Shown piece after piece: positions 7,780-42,386 of a stretch of 64,000 nt of DNA (the first letter of the stretch is position 1; the number at the start of each line of letters is the position of its first letter). Below the pieces are notes generated by a model that was not told the DNA's origin, ran no database searches, and saw nothing but the letters and a program-made list of their open reading frames with translations. Origin of the DNA: Hyaloraphidium curvatum SAG 235-1 (Eukaryota; Fungi; Monoblepharomycota); contig JAIVFI010000025.1 of NCBI GenBank assembly GCA_025558095.1, positions 496,001-560,000 on the forward strand. The letters run 5' to 3'. The position numbers and the translations under genes were made by a program.

Positions 7780-9174
7780 ATGCCCTTCCTCGCTGCGTCC
7801 CTCGCGGCGGTCGCCTTCCTTTCCGCCGCCTCGGGCGCCGCGGCGCAGTACACCCCGACCCCGCAGCTCGGCGGCTCTCTCCTGCGCTGGGAGTTTGCCG
7901 GCTGCGTCTCCAGCGAAGCCGCCAGCACCTACGACGGCTACTCTGAAGGCCTCGCGACTACCTGCGCCAACACCGTCGGACCGCGCTGGGTGCGCCCCTG
8001 GGCGACGAGCGAACTCAACGGCCGTCAACCCGACGGCGCCACCCGGTGCAGCGATCCAGCGGCGCCTTTTGCGGCTTGGTGCGCCGTGTCGACCGGCGCC
8101 GAGCGCAACCGCTGCGTCCAGTCGTGCGCCGACGGCGGGGCCTTTGTGCTGGCCACGGACACGACCTTCAGCGGCAATGGCAAGATTGCCTGCCTGGGCC
8201 CCGACTCCTACTCCTGCACCTGGTTCGAGGACGCCGAGTGCAAGATCCTCCGCCCCCTTGCGAAGCCCGCCATCACCGTCGCCGAGGGCGTGAGGTGCCG
8301 CACGGGCGGCAGGGGCTCCAACTGGTGCCGCGAGGCCTACGACCAGATCCACCTCGGCAAGCCGCAGACGGACTGCTCGGCCGGCCTTCCGCCCCCCGAC
8401 ACCACGTGCGAAGCCACCATCGGCGGTCCCGACCTCGAGGGCTCCGAGTTCGTGTGCTTTCAGGACGGCCACGGCTTGGACACCTTCGTTCCCGTCAAGC
8501 TCACCAAGTACAACCAGGTCGCCTGCCAGAGCCGCAACTCGAGGGACTGCATCTGGGTTTCCAGGTCTTGCTGCGAAAAGCTCGCCGCCACGGCCGACAG
8601 CACCACCCCTTACCTCGAGGCCGGCGTGCAGCACGAGGCAGTGTGGGGCGACGACGGTTTCGTCGACCCCCTGGGCTGGGCAACCCTGGCGCGGAACTCG
8701 TTCGCGGCGAACCCGCCCAAGCCCGCGCAGCGCCCCGACGAGTCGGGCGTGGAGGGCGAGTTCCGGGGCTGCGAGGCGGACATCACCTCGCGCTGCAACG
8801 ACAGGCCCGATACCCAACTGCAGCTCGCCTTCAGTACGTGCATGGGCCAGGCCAAGGCGTACAAGGGCTTCTCAGCCTACGGCGGCCCGCTGCAGTGCCC
8901 CGACAACGTCGGGAGGGTGCTCGCCTCGTGCGTCGCCGAGTTCGGATCGCGTTACAAGCAGCCAGCGTGCTCCCGGATCGGGCCCATGGTCAACTACAAG
9001 GTCCGCGCGCCCGAGGGCGACGGATGCAAGCTGGGACCCGACGGGGCCGACAGGGATCGGTCTCTGACCATTTGCGCCGAGGTCTGCGGGAACGTCACCG
9101 ACGGCAGGGGCTCCAACTACTCGGAGTGCAGGGAGGACGGGCTCTTCTGGTGCTACTGCACGAAATACCTTTGA
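7780..9174 (+). CDS. Secreted cysteine-rich protein of unknown function
   Basis: Signal peptide, numerous Cys, 464-aa intronless ORF with GC3-biased codons. Confidence 0.8.
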   Translation: MPFLAASLAAVAFLSAASGAAAQYTPTPQLGGSLLRWEFAGCVSSEAASTYDGYSEGLATTCANTVGPRWVRPWATSELNGRQPDGATRCSDPAAPFAAWCAVSTGAERNRCVQSCADGGAFVLATDTTFSGNGKIACLGPDSYSCTWFEDAECKILRPLAKPAITVAEGVRCRTGGRGSNWCREAYDQIHLGKPQTDCSAGLPPPDTTCEATIGGPDLEGSEFVCFQDGHGLDTFVPVKLTKYNQVACQSRNSRDCIWVSRSCCEKLAATADSTTPYLEAGVQHEAVWGDDGFVDPLGWATLARNSFAANPPKPAQRPDESGVEGEFRGCEADITSRCNDRPDTQLQLAFSTCMGQAKAYKGFSAYGGPLQCPDNVGRVLASCVAEFGSRYKQPACSRIGPMVNYKVRAPEGDGCKLGPDGADRDRSLTICAEVCGNVTDGRGSNYSECREDGLFWCYCTKYL

Positions 9175-35475: not shown

Positions 35476-38096
35476 TCAAATACGCCCGTATCCGGCCTTC
35501 CCGGGCCATCCAGGCACAAGAGACGACGCATCCTCCTGCTCCTTCCTTCGCCGCTCCTTCCCCCTCCGCAACGCAACCAGCGCAGCGACCGCGCAGCACG
35601 AAGCAGCCAACGCCGTCGAGCCAACCGCAACCGCCGCCGCCAGCAACGCCTCCGCGGTTCCCGCCGAGGACGCCGCATCCGGGGCAGAAGGCGCGGGCTC
35701 CGCCTGCACCTCCTCCTTCCGGGGCACCCTTATCCCAGCGCTGGCATCGGCGCCGATCGACGACGACCTCCGCAGGGCCGAGCTCGGCACCGCGACGTCC
35801 CTCGTCTGCAGCCTCCTCCACCTCCGCTGGCCCGAGGCCGCTTGCTGGTCGAAGTAGATCCTGAAGCTCGCGAAGAAGGAGTAGTCCGACACCGAATCGA
35901 AGTCGTCGGTGGATAGGAAGGCGACCGAAGATACGTCCGACCCGATGTCGGCAGGCATCATGTTGGGCGTCAGCTTCATGATGACCAGGTCCGAGCCGGG
36001 GAAGTACTGGAAGTTGCAGTTGATGGCCAACTGCGACAGCGCGCCGGGCGCGGACGGACCTCCCGCGGATTCGACGAGGGTCGAGTTGACATTGCGCGGG
36101 ATGGCCGTGTTGGTGCCCGAGTTCGGGGTGCGCAGGGTCTGCTTGCGGAGCAGCGTCAGCTTGGTCAGCCGCGACTCGTAGATCGGGAGGTCGGGCGAGG
36201 TGAAGCGGGTCGTCAGGGTGACGGTATCGCCGAAGAAGTATCCGGATTCGGTGTCGGTGGAGGCACGCCGCGCCACGGCGCCGGATGCGCCGTACTCTCG
36301 CCGCCGCAAGGCCTGGGCGGGCGTGCGCACGGCCACGCGCATCGACACGACGGTGTAGTCGCCCCCAAACCCGGTGCGGGCTGCGAACGCTTCGTAGGCC
36401 CTCGCGGCTGTCACGCCGGCGCACGTGGTGTTGGTCACGGCGGGATCCGACATCTCGTACCAGTTCTCGATCGACCTGACCACGGCCATGCCGTTGGACA
36501 TGTAGAGGTTGAGGACCTCGCCCTTGATCCATCCGTCGCAGCTGAACGCGATGTAGTGCTTGCTTTCCAGGCTCTGCGAGTACCCCGGTGCGAGGAAGAT
36601 CTTGCCCGCCATCTCGACGTTCGGCGGATCGAAGTAGGGGCTGCCGAAAACCGCTCCAGTCTCGATGTCGACGTAGCTCAGATCCAGTGCAGGTCCGATG
36701 ACGATTGGGTCACCGGATGTGGATACGTTGGCGACGGTGTACAGCACCGTAGTGCCGAACAGCTTCCATGACGGGTTGACGTAACCGCACTTCTTGGCCT
36801 TCCCAGGAGCGGGGTCCGCCCCCGCACCGATCCCGGCGGCGCTGCAGACGAACGGCCCCGCGACGGTGGCCTCGAACCACGAGCCCGTCTCGTCCGACCC
36901 GAAGCGCGCCAGGGCGCCCGCGGGAGCCCCGCAGGTCTCACCCTCCTGCGCGCAGAGGATCCACTTGGACGGCTTGTCGGCCTCCATGACGGCCGACACC
37001 GAGGCGACGGTGTTGTAGAGCGACGTGCACAGGTCCAGGCTCGGCACGCCCTGGGCGTTGGGGGTGCCGATGACGGCGTTGGCGGTGAGTACCTTGCCCG
37101 TGCAATCCTGAGTGCCGGCGGCACCGGGGAAGCAGTCCGTCCGGAAGGGGAAGCCGTACTGGCCGCCGACGTCACATTGCTGGCCAATGTAGATGGCGAG
37201 TTCGCCGGATTGGCAGCAGAAGTCGTGGGTGTCGAAAGGCGCTGTGCTGCCATCAGTCTTGGTGCACGTCGGGGGGTTGTAGGACGCAATCGATACGGTG
37301 CCTGGATACCCGGGCAGAAGGACCAAGTTGTCGGACAGGGTCAGGTTGTTGGGCCACCTGAAAAAACAGTGAGCGCACGATACATGTGCGCGTCGGTCCA
37401 ACCCGTACCGCGAGCACATCTGGAAGTCGACGAGAAGCGTCCGGTTGGTGGACGGGTCGTAGCTGATGCCCGTCACGTTGAAGTTCTTGATGCCTGACTC
37501 CTCGAGGATCTTGATGTCGGTCTGAACGTTCACGGTCGTAGGCAGGGCGATCGACACCGGGTACGCATAGCGCGAGGCCTGCCGGTTGCCGCCGGGGAAG
37601 ACGTCCTGCCATTCCAGATACACGGCATTGTTGCGGACCTCGTAACCGGGGCGGCTGACGGTGTCGGGGTTGGACCAGGCGCAGCCGCGGAGCGAGCGCC
37701 AGGTGCCCCGGAGGGTGTAGTCGTAGCGGCAGGTCGCGGTGCTGCCGACCGAGTCGGCCACGCAGGTGGCGTCCGAGTGCCTGTCTTTGCCGAGGTACAT
37801 GGCCACCTTGCGGCCGGAGACGGGCTTGGTCCAGGCGGCGACCGAGATTTCCGCGCGGGTCATGTTGGTGCGGCCCGCGTCGACCTGGAAGGGGCGGCCA
37901 GTGTTAGCAACCGATCCAAGATGCGGGCAAGCCAACAGCTGGTAGTCACCTGAGGGGCGTTGGTGCCGGGCTGGCCGGACGTGCAGCCAGCGAGGGCGGC
38001 GAGTTCGCCGCGCTGGGCCCAATCAACGCCCTGCGCATCCGAGCCGCCGACCAGGGCCAGCACGGCGGCGCCGAAGAGGGCCGCGAATCCGCGCAT
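35476..38096 (-). CDS. Type I membrane glycoprotein with cysteine-rich ectodomain
   Basis: Signal peptide MRGFAALFGAAVLALVGG; long ectodomain; TM segment followed by RRGKERRRK; introns near 37886-37949 and 37358-37408. Confidence 0.78.
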
Positions 38097-38722: not shown

Positions 38723-41700
38723 ATGAGCCAGGGCGCGACGGGCGGCTCGCCGCGGCGCCCGGGCCTTTCGCTGTCGCCGCGGCGGCCTCCGCTGCCCACC
38801 GCGGCGCGCGCCGCCGACGCGGTGACTCTCACCGAACGCGGCGCGGCGGCGCTCGCCCTGTGGGCGCGGATCCGCCGGCGGCCGCCCGACCTCGACGGCG
38901 ACCTCGTGCTGCAGGTGCTCGACGTCTACAGATGTGGGGAAGAATGGGACTGCCGGGGGACGCGCTCACACGAGTATCGCAGACACCGTCGATGGGAACT
39001 GGGAGGCCGCCACGGATCTAACGGCCAAAGGGCAATATGCGTACGACCTCGTGCTCAGCGACGGCATTGACAAGGTGTGGTCGCTGGCCATGTGTGCAGC
39101 GCGGCCCGTCGGCTCACTCCATGCCCCGGCACGCCCCGGCAGGCGAAGGTCGTGCTGGACCCCGCGCTGAACAACCTTGTGGCGACCGGCGCCGTCTCCA
39201 AGCTCGACTTCATCTGCCTCCGCGACCTGCGCCGCGCTTACGACTCGTCCAAGCCCAGCGTTCCCGGCGTCAACGTCCTCCTCGACTTCGAGGTCCTCTC
39301 CCCCCGCAGCGCCGCCGTACAGCTCGGCGACCGCAAGCCCTCCTACCCGCGCGGCACCGAGCTCCCCATCCGGATCCGCGCCCCCGCCATCGGCGGGCGC
39401 GGCGCGTACCTCCCCGCGCACGGGATCCACCCGCTTTCCTGGCGCAAAAGGAGCGACATCCCCACGCGCACCTCGCTGACCCTGGACATCGACGCCGGGC
39501 ATCCGGGGATCCCGGACGACCACCCGACCATTGCCGAGATGCTGGCGCTGTACATCGGCAAGAGGCCGCGCGGGTTCGGGACCGTCGGGCCGGGGGACCG
39601 CGAGGAAGAGCCGGCGATCCTCGGGCGGGTGGTCAAGAAGATGGCCTGGATGTGGTACGGGAAGCCGAGCGACGGCGGAGAAAGGTTCCCCTGCCTGTTT
39701 TCCTTCACCATCGGTGGGTCGTTGCCACCTGCATTGCGGCGTGCGAATCTGACGTCGTTGGACAGCCGACTGTTCGGCCGGCGGCGTCACCGAGCTGCAG
39801 GTCAACGTGTGGAACCAGCTCTCCATCGACCTGTTCCACCCCGTGCAGATCAACGACATCGTCTGGCTCGAGGGCTACAAGGCCCGCAACGTCAAGGACG
39901 GCGCCGGCGTCGAGGTGATGCTCAACACGAGGAACCCGAAGGGCGTCCTCCGGATCGTCCGACGTGCGTGGCGTGCCGTGCTTCCGCTCCCCGGTCGCCC
40001 TGACCCCGATCCCGCCAGCCGCCGCCCACCTCTCCTCCTGGCCCCCCGCCTACCTCACCGCGCGCCTTCCACCCCCCCTCCTCCGCCTCCCGGGCTCGCA
40101 CCTCCTCCAGCGCTTCCCCGACAACACCGAGCTCGAACACGCCGGCCTCCTCGTGCACGTCGGCCTGGTCGAGCGCGAGATCGCGGGCGGTGAGGAGGCG
40201 GAGTACCGCTGGTGCGTCGTGCGCGACCTCCACTCCGCCGGCGGCGGAGGCAGGGACGTCGCGGTCAAGGTGTACACGTCCGCGGGGCTGGGTGCGGTGA
40301 GGGGCAGGATGGCGCCCGGGTTCCACCTCCTCGCCACGCACCTCCGCCTGTTGTCCTCGGCAACCCCCGCCAAGAAGCCCGGGAGGCTGGGCGGGAGGGC
40401 GTTGTACCTCGTGGCAACCCGCGCGACGCAGGCGTGGTGCTTCGATCCCCTCGATCCCGGGGGTTGGTGGTTCCTCGACGGCGAACCCGGGGAAATGGTG
40501 CGCAAGATGTGCGTGCCGAGGGAGATGTGGGGGCAGGATTGGACCGTGGGCGGCAACGCGGATCCGGCGAGGCCGCTGGCGGATTACGGGGCGCTGGCGA
40601 GGATGAGGCCGAAACTACCGGATGCGGTGCCGTTTCCGAGGCTGGAGGAGGTGGCGGGGGCGTTGGTGCTGGGGGAGCGCAAGAGGATCTGGGTCGTTTG
40701 CAGGTGGGTGGTCGGGGCTTGCCGCCTTCTGGAAAAGGGGCTCATGCGGCCGATCGGCCAGGGTCAATGCCGTTTGGTTGCCTCTGTCGGGAGGAGGCAG
40801 CAGGCGTCTCCTCATCCGGAACACGGACGAGGCTGAAGGCGTGGAAGGGACGCCCGACGCGGATGCCCGGCCCGAGGCGGCCGAGTCCGAGCGGGACGCC
40901 GAGGACCAGAACGCCGCGCCGGAACCCGAGCCCGAGCCCGAGCCCGAAGCCGCTTCCGGCGCGCAGAAGCGGCCTTTGGAGGACGCCGCGACGCCGGCTT
41001 CCAAGCGGCCCAAGCCCAAGGAGACCCCGGCGTCCATTTTCGGGACGATAGGCTCGTTCTTTGGGTTCGGGCGCAACAGGAACGGGGACGTGGTCGAGGG
41101 CGGCATCGTGGAAGGCGTCGAAGAGGTTGAGAACGGGGAGGGGGCGGAGGGTGCCAAGGAGGCGCCGGCGGTGGAGGGCGGCGAGGGAGCGGAGAAGGAA
41201 CAGGAAGTGCTGCCGGAGGAAGGTTCGGCGGACGGTCGAGCCCCTCAGCCTGAAGACGATCTCGAGGTGGTGATCGAAATCAGCGAACCCGGCACGCCCA
41301 TGTTGTGAGTCGATCGTTCGGTTGTTCGGTCACGGTTTTGACGGCATGTTCCAGGGAACGGGGGATCCTGCGCGTCTCGACCGTCCCCCGCATATTCCCG
41401 CCGCCCCACCCCGATCCCAAGATCCTCGGCGCGCACCTTGAAGCTTCGGCCATTCTGCGCTCTTTCCCCGTGCTCGTCGAGCCCCCCGAGCTGCCCTCGG
41501 ACACGGGCGACCTGCACGACGCTGAGTCGCGCGAGAAGGAGACTGAAGCAGAGTGCTCCGACGCCGCCGCGGACCCGGACCGCCCCGATCCCGTCGAGGA
41601 GCTGCTCGGCGACAGCGCCGCCGATTCGGACCTGCTTCCCGCGTGCTTGGAGCTGGACCCCGTCGATTCGTTCCCGCTCCGATTGCGGGCGCTGGTGCTC

Positions 41701-42093
41701 CCGGACTGCCTGCGCCCCGTCGAAGGCAAGAAGGTGGACGCGGCCAAGGCCATGGACGATCCCGCCGGGTGGGTCAGGTCGGCGTTCGCGGGCGCCATGG
41801 CGCCGTGCCTAGTGCCGCGCATGTCCGAGGCGCTCCTGGCCTCGCGCGACGGCGAGCTGGGTTCGATGCTGGCCGACTCGTGGAACGGGCGCGCGTTCCT
41901 CGTCGCGGTCAACCTTCGCAGGGACGGGCCCGGGGCGGGGGGCGTAAGATGCGTGCTCAGCGAGGGGTACATGGTGCCCGAGGGCGAGCAGGAGGGGGTT
42001 ATGGTCAGAGAGGGCGGGGTGGCGTTCGTGATCAAGGACGGCGTCGAGGAGCGGATCGAGCTGGACGAGGAGGGGGCCGAGGAGGAGGAGTAG
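38723..42093 (+). CDS. RADX: RADX-like (RPA-related OB-fold ssDNA-binding) protein
   Basis: Spliced product VLQVLDVYRY...YAYDLVLSDGIDKAKVVLDPALNNLV, WYGKP...F.IAD...VNVWNQL, LNTRNP, C-terminal FLVAVNLRRDG. Intron 41305-41354 links to ORF 41305..42093. Confidence 0.72.
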
Positions 42094-42386
42094 GAGAATT
42101 GCGATACCGTGGATACCCTCTTGTAGTTGCGCAGCGTTGTTGTGATGCTTTTGGACGGCCTCAGCGCCAATGGCGCGCCTCCATCCCCGATCGCTCTTGG
42201 CGGGACGTGAGTGTCACCCAAACGGCACTATCCCTTGCCAGAAGGCCGCTCCAGTCGACCTTTGTCGGAGCCGCTTTCTAATCTCCCTCTGCCCTCGTCT
42301 GTCGGGCCGGCAACTCGCTCCGCGCCGTCCCTAGGCCATCCACAACCCCGTCCCCGCCCCGCCGCGCGGCCCGCCCGTTCGCGACC

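Follow-up and report, generated by a model that had tools for sequence, protein, structure and literature searches.

Introduction

Human RADX (CXorf57; Pfam family PF17659; structures 8U5Y and 8U61) is built of four OB folds, the fourth being split by a long disordered insertion. It binds single-stranded DNA (ssDNA) almost exclusively via OB2, a binding that is coupled to oligomerisation via OB1-OB4 contacts; it also binds RAD51 directly, stimulates its ATPase and has been proposed to cap RAD51 filaments. Here we describe a gene located on the + strand at positions 38723-42093 of a stretch of 64,000 nucleotides (the window) from the fungus Hyaloraphidium curvatum SAG 235-1, which we read, with a probability of roughly 0.8, as a native, expressed and single-copy H. 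curvatum gene encoding a 1012-residue member of the RADX family (PF17659). What is new is the occurrence of a known family in a lineage where it was not expected, and the correction of the public gene model.

RADX has been called mammalian (PMC7430644), orthologues from outside the mammals were described with identities of at least about 50% (PMC10962997), and the table of a review gives no yeast counterpart (PMC12810152). Our literature search found no paper naming RADX alongside chytrids, Hyaloraphidium or PF17659.

Relationship to the RADX family

Exon 3 of the gene, used as query in an exhaustive HMMER search, retrieved a 767-residue protein identical to the window, KAI9014271.1, titled "hypothetical protein" and assigned to Hyaloraphidium curvatum (Monoblepharomycota, Fungi). 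This record, which covers exons 1-6, and exon 7 were used separately for protein searches and folds. When compared with Pfam, KAI9014271.1 scored 35.0 bits (E 5.3e-9) with the RADX family, whose gathering cut-off is 33.4, the strongest part of the match comprising residues 63-115; no other family was above its cut-off. The next one, Rep-A_N (the RPA70 N-terminal domain), remained under its cut-off with 17.4 bits (E 0.0045, residues 60-128), and KAI9014271.1 showed no Pfam match to REPA_OB_2 or Rep_fac-A_C at E 10 or below. Two relatives, P0004 and P0003, independently matched Pfam RADX over OB2 (E 1e-7 and 0.0044, respectively). PF17659 is moreover the precomputed Pfam label of the public record, and thus the family link is visible to any database user.

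The sequence search of the whole PDB with KAI9014271.1 gave a sole match, human RADX (8u5y_B, E 1.5e-6). The same chain was the sole match up to E 10 for profile A2, composed of KAI9014271.1 and exon pieces of three relatives, now with 63.5 bits and an E value of 1.2e-16; no chain of RPA70, POT1, Teb1 or CTC1 was among the PDB matches of this profile, even at E 10. The profile alignment is collinear, residues 64-120 being placed on human 70-124 (OB1) and 237-521 on human 228-512 (OB2-OB3). By language-model features in the ESM Atlas the three nearest clusters are all RADX (0.91-0.92, with 175-178 shared features). Exons taken singly matched no Pfam family, and exons 3 and 4 alone gave no match in the PDB by phmmer; the signal therefore requires the joined protein or a profile. 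Neither the Pfam RADX model run on the raw genome nor a search for the HARP (SMARCAL1) domain gave a match, but the controls of both were equally silent and these results are hence uninformative.

The initial annotation, made from the letters of the window, had taken the locus for a fungal RADX hidden across fragmented open frames. In both the Pfam and the PDB sequence searches the best match is indeed RADX, not RPA1, CTC1 or POT1; with PF17659 above its cut-off and 8U5Y as the sole sequence match in the PDB, the reading as RADX is supported at the sequence level for OB1-OB3, that is, to about residue 520. Taken together, we consider it very probable that the protein belongs to the RADX family.

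Human RADX and the fungal protein share OB1, OB2 and OB3 in equal order and spacing, a long non-globular insertion (past residue 566 or so in the human protein and past about 607 in the fungal one) and a similar overall size, 855 and 1012 residues respectively. They also have in common the motifs Y.YD..SDG, LDP.LN.LV, YGKP, AD.S, WN.L, DY..K/R, E.xLN.R.P, RLP, YRW and LYL..T, RLP preceding OB3 and YRW sitting within it. On the other hand, the fungal OB2 has a shorter L45 loop that is devoid of the human Y307/F309 segment, and the insertion is strongly acidic and about 250 residues long, compared with 110 in human RADX. The motifs that had been listed for the translated exons were all found there in the expected order, at these residues:

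VLQVLDVYRY, 62-71
YAYDLVLSDG, 89-98
LDPALNNLV, 106-114
GGRGAYL, 185-191
WYGKP, 272-276
FTIAD, 289-293
VNVWNQL, 304-310
LNTRNP, 344-349

Their human counterparts, as named in the initial annotation (VLAVQRY, YCYDVTISDG..LDPSLNSLV, RYYGKP, ADSSG, MWNAL and LNLRDP), were likewise seen in the HMMER alignments to 8u5y_B.

Gene structure and transcription

Reading of the sequence and a frame check by script gave one gene of seven exons, with the ATG start at 38723 and the stop codon at 42091-42093, its coding sequence of 3039 nucleotides comprising 1012 codons plus the stop. The six introns (38934-38982, 39075-39142, 39714-39765, 39964-40018, 40704-40761 and 41305-41354) measure 49, 68, 52, 55, 58 and 50 nucleotides; all six begin with GT, end with AG and preserve the frame. 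Both outer bounds of the gene had been given correctly by the initial annotation, as had the introns 38934-38982 and 41305-41354, while the intron placed at 39075-39141 ends one base later, at 39142. The exons, all on the + strand, are as follows:

38723..38933, + strand, exon 1: residues 1-70 plus one base; start codon, N-terminal stretch and start of OB1 (VLQVLDVYR); joined 38933 to 38983 in the transcript contig
38983..39074, + strand, exon 2: residues 71-101; core of OB1 with YAYDLVLSDGIDK; aligns to human RADX 70-120
39143..39713, + strand, exon 3: residues 102-291; remainder of OB1 (LDPALNNLV), linker and first half of OB2 (PAILGRVVKK..WYGKP..FSFTI)
39766..39963, + strand, exon 4: residues 292-357; second half of OB2 with W307, Y329, R332, N345 and R347
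40019..40703, + strand, exon 5: residues 358-585; ARLPPP linker motif, OB3 (EYRWC 419-423, LYLVAT 486-491) and start of the C-terminal domain (RIWVVCR)
40762..41304, + strand, exon 6: residues 586-767; short strand-like stretch, then acidic low-complexity sequence from about 40823; 24% D+E
41355..42093, + strand, exon 7: residues 768-1012 plus the stop; joined 41304 to 41355 in the transcript contig

A contig of 2974 nucleotides from a public sequencing run, of a kind guessed to be RNA, maps to 38900-42159 with adapters at both ends; it shows exactly these six splice joints and otherwise no difference from the window. Because it is devoid of all six introns we take it as a spliced transcript, and the exons, all six joints lying in one contig, as co-transcribed. 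Other contigs of the same run touch 41170-41192 and a point at about 41982 with long unmatched ends; these short contacts are probably low-complexity GAG/GGA repeats common to unrelated transcripts.

In the public record exons 1-6 are joined exactly as in the transcript; KAI9014271.1 then runs through the last donor site into a TGA at 41306-41308 and is therefore without exon 7. It thus falls short, within 41305-42093, of the 245 C-terminal residues that the transcript supports and that a relative, on the contig L002, conserves. The public gene model is corrected here by the addition of these last 245 residues.

The G+C content of 38723-42093 is about 66-73%, and the region falls apart into several long open frames. 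With about 68-70% the gene has the same G+C content as its flanks, it lies in a contig of 653,716 bp, and it is single-copy in the H. curvatum genome. Adjoining upstream on the - strand, window 35476-38022, there is an intronless open frame of 848 residues that is Cys-rich, hydrophobic over a C-terminal stretch and basic in its tail, and that resembles a cell-surface protein.

OB2 structure and DNA-contact residues

The AlphaFold2 model of KAI9014271.1, built on an alignment of eight rows, is poor (mean predicted local distance difference test, pLDDT, of 43), OB2 alone being usable, at moderate confidence, with values of 60-85. A Foldseek search with this model placed 8u5y chains A, B and C at ranks 1-3 (E 1.8e-11), ahead of RPA70. 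In VIA-align the top match was again 8u5y_B, with Z 13.3 and a root-mean-square deviation of 2.9 A over 131 residues, residues 206-362 of the model lying on 202-348 of the chain. The structural evidence, which comes from a predicted model, is consistent with RADX and not decisive.

The DNA contacts described for OB2 of human RADX include R232, R248, Y250, Q262, F264, W279, Y301, K304, Y307, F309, N331 and R333 (PMC10962997). We mapped the contact residues through the HMMER alignments, except that N331 and R333 were paired by the motif EVMLNTRNP / EICLNLRDP and the range of the VIA-align match, overriding the HMMER placement. Residues called invariant below are so across all four fungal-type sequences.

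Human Y250: Y273 here, conserved, invariant
Human W279: W307 here, conserved, invariant
Human Y301: Y329 here, conserved, invariant
Human K304: R332 here, conservative change, invariant
Human N331: N345 here, conserved, invariant
Human R333: R347 here, conserved in H. curvatum only

C-terminal half

After about residue 606 the protein continues with an acidic low-complexity segment of about 250 residues, followed by a conserved and more hydrophobic C-terminal region. The acidic segment is located where OB4 of human RADX carries its disordered insertion, the place expected for it in a RADX-type protein. In exon 7 the first 95 residues or so are still acidic, and the sequence becomes conserved and more hydrophobic from about 41641 (PACLELDPV, WNGRAFLVAVNLRRDGPG); this part presumably makes up the latter half of the C-terminal domain. 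The C-terminal motif FLVAVNL named in the initial annotation is located in this exon; since exon 7 is matchless and its own model (pLDDT 37) unusable, the parallel drawn to human RADX at this motif stays tentative.

Within the acidic segment there is a conserved hydrophobic island, IFGTIGSFFGFG, at 41036-41071 (residues 678-689). The island SIFGTIGSFFGFG corresponds to GIFGFLTRFFG in L002 (about 7860-7895), in divergent surroundings. Its sequence conforms to a degenerate motif for interaction with PCNA, x-x-x-[IL]-x-x-F-F, and may speculatively be considered a candidate for such a motif. A bipartite pattern resembling a nuclear localisation signal, KRP...KRPKPK, is found at 40967-41020 (residues 655-672), its equivalent in L002 being KRK...KVKKKK. 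The N-terminal tail bears two SPRR sites (CDK-type S-P-x-R) at 38747-38785 (residues 9-21), and the stretch LSLSPRR.PLP is conserved in L002 and L003; the conserved sites hint at a possible phosphorylation during the cell cycle.

Relatives and distribution

Besides the gene's own record, exon 3 retrieved three other clusters in the exhaustive search, all of them fragments from sequencing runs or metagenomes and lying on contigs of about 55% G+C. No other named fungus was matched in any search, this one included. Homologue searches with KAI9014271.1, profile A2 and exon 7 returned the own record or nothing, and a metagenome scan with the OB2 alignment gave no confirmed relative.

The most complete view comes from L002, a contig of 101.8 kb on which the whole gene is found in the same order with 29-49% identity; the counterpart of exon 7 lies downstream (8353-9024) and is 46% identical by tblastn and 50% in a MAFFT alignment. 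Introns after "D(V/I)YR", "SDG(I/V)DK" and "RIV" are common to H. curvatum and L002, and the intron inside OB2 was found in H. curvatum only. L002 also carries an R3H gene (397-1182) that is 61% identical to C25:625809-626567, on the same H. curvatum contig as the RADX-family gene and about 88 kb from it, which suggests a loosely conserved linkage and a related fungus as the source of L002.

Alternative explanations

Several observations weigh against the assignment to RADX. The Pfam score exceeds the cut-off by 1.6 bits only, and human RADX is only about 20% identical. Of the 13 human contact residues, seven are not conserved (R232, R248, Q262, F264, Y307, F309 and R396), and the human QVPK stretch, which is altered in the RADX QVPK variant of the literature, reads KKPG in H. 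curvatum and AVP(T/G) in the relatives. Exon 7 has no match in Pfam, in the PDB (chance level only) or in the ESM Atlas. Both AlphaFold2 models, that of KAI9014271.1 and that of exon 7 alone, are poor and come from shallow alignments, and domains of Teb1 and RPA match the OB2 model at Z 10-12.5, close below RADX by a margin of 1-2 Z units.

These last values are among the points that would favour a multi-OB protein that binds ssDNA, is confined to this lineage and is only a deep paralogue of the RPA70/POT1/Teb1/CTC1 group, with some other role, for example in binding telomere ends or in meiotic recombination. With RPA70/RPA1 the protein shares a multi-OB ssDNA-binding architecture, an OB1 resembling RPA70N (the sub-threshold Rep-A_N score) and an OB2 whose modelled fold matches RPA DBD-A/B at Z 10-12; with POT1, Teb1 and CTC1 it shares tandem OB folds, and these are among its structural and language-model neighbours, POT1 and MEIOB clusters standing at 0.90-0.91 in the ESM Atlas. 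The C-terminal domain, in addition, is putative in its fold. Yet the profile match to RADX extends over about 340 collinear residues and three domains, while neither the chains nor the Pfam domains of RPA match the fungal protein significantly, and POT1, Teb1 and CTC1 do not match it at the sequence level. Besides, the genome has its own RPA1 (C25:370464-370779) and a separate POT1 gene (C6:600431-600586), and the family profile is blind to that RPA1, giving at most 0.4 bits on its locus. A deep paralogue of this kind thus seems unlikely to us.

Even less probable, in our judgement, is that the RADX-family gene reached H. curvatum horizontally, with an animal or some other eukaryote as the donor, or that it represents contaminating DNA. 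The very patchy distribution, with three relatives from the exon 3 search and no other named fungus, would agree with such an origin, but the gene is transcribed, contains six short introns and lies inside a large contig with the G+C content of its flanks. Any transfer would have to be ancient given an identity to human RADX of only about 20%, and the intron positions common to L002, together with the R3H gene, point towards vertical inheritance in a clade of fungi. That the locus is a decaying or non-functional remnant is very improbable: the public model ending at 767 residues and the long acidic low-complexity segment could give that impression, which is contradicted by a spliced transcript with an uninterrupted frame of 1012 codons and by the conservation of every domain, exon 7 included, in the relatives at 40-50% identity. 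A native RADX-family gene therefore remains the reading that we adopt.

Proposed function and origin

For this RADX-family protein, family membership and ssDNA binding constitute the well-supported part of the interpretation, as judged from sequence. By analogy with human RADX, ssDNA would be bound mainly through OB2, using Y273, W307, Y329, R332 and N345, and oligomerisation is probable. At replication forks under stress the protein might further restrain the RAD51 filaments formed on ssDNA, opposing BRCA2. Genes of the RAD51 family and the OB1 domain of BRCA2 were found in the genome, and thus H. curvatum possesses the pathway that human RADX works in; antagonism of RAD51 by the fungal protein, proposed by homology alone, is nevertheless a tentative suggestion that we would not favour over its opposite.

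The RADX family is probably much older than has been assumed. For a native gene with introns that shares only about 20% identity with human RADX, descent from the common ancestor of animals and fungi is the simplest explanation and a reasonable inference. A wider proposal, to which we give slightly less than an even chance, is that RADX did not arise within the vertebrates but was already present before animals and fungi diverged, and that nearly all fungi outside the Hyaloraphidium lineage, which retained it, have since lost it, the yeasts included, an ancestral presence in opisthokonts and a loss in yeasts being here deduced from two lineages. The residues shared with human RADX would then represent an indispensable core, which may consist of Y250, W279, Y301, K304 and N331 (human numbering) in OB2 and of RLP and YRW around OB3, and the PCNA-type motif may aid access to the fork. 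A homologue in an early-branching fungus, at about 20% identity, would place the origin of this regulator of RAD51 much earlier, and so distant a sequence would help to tell the essential residues of the family from the lineage-specific ones.

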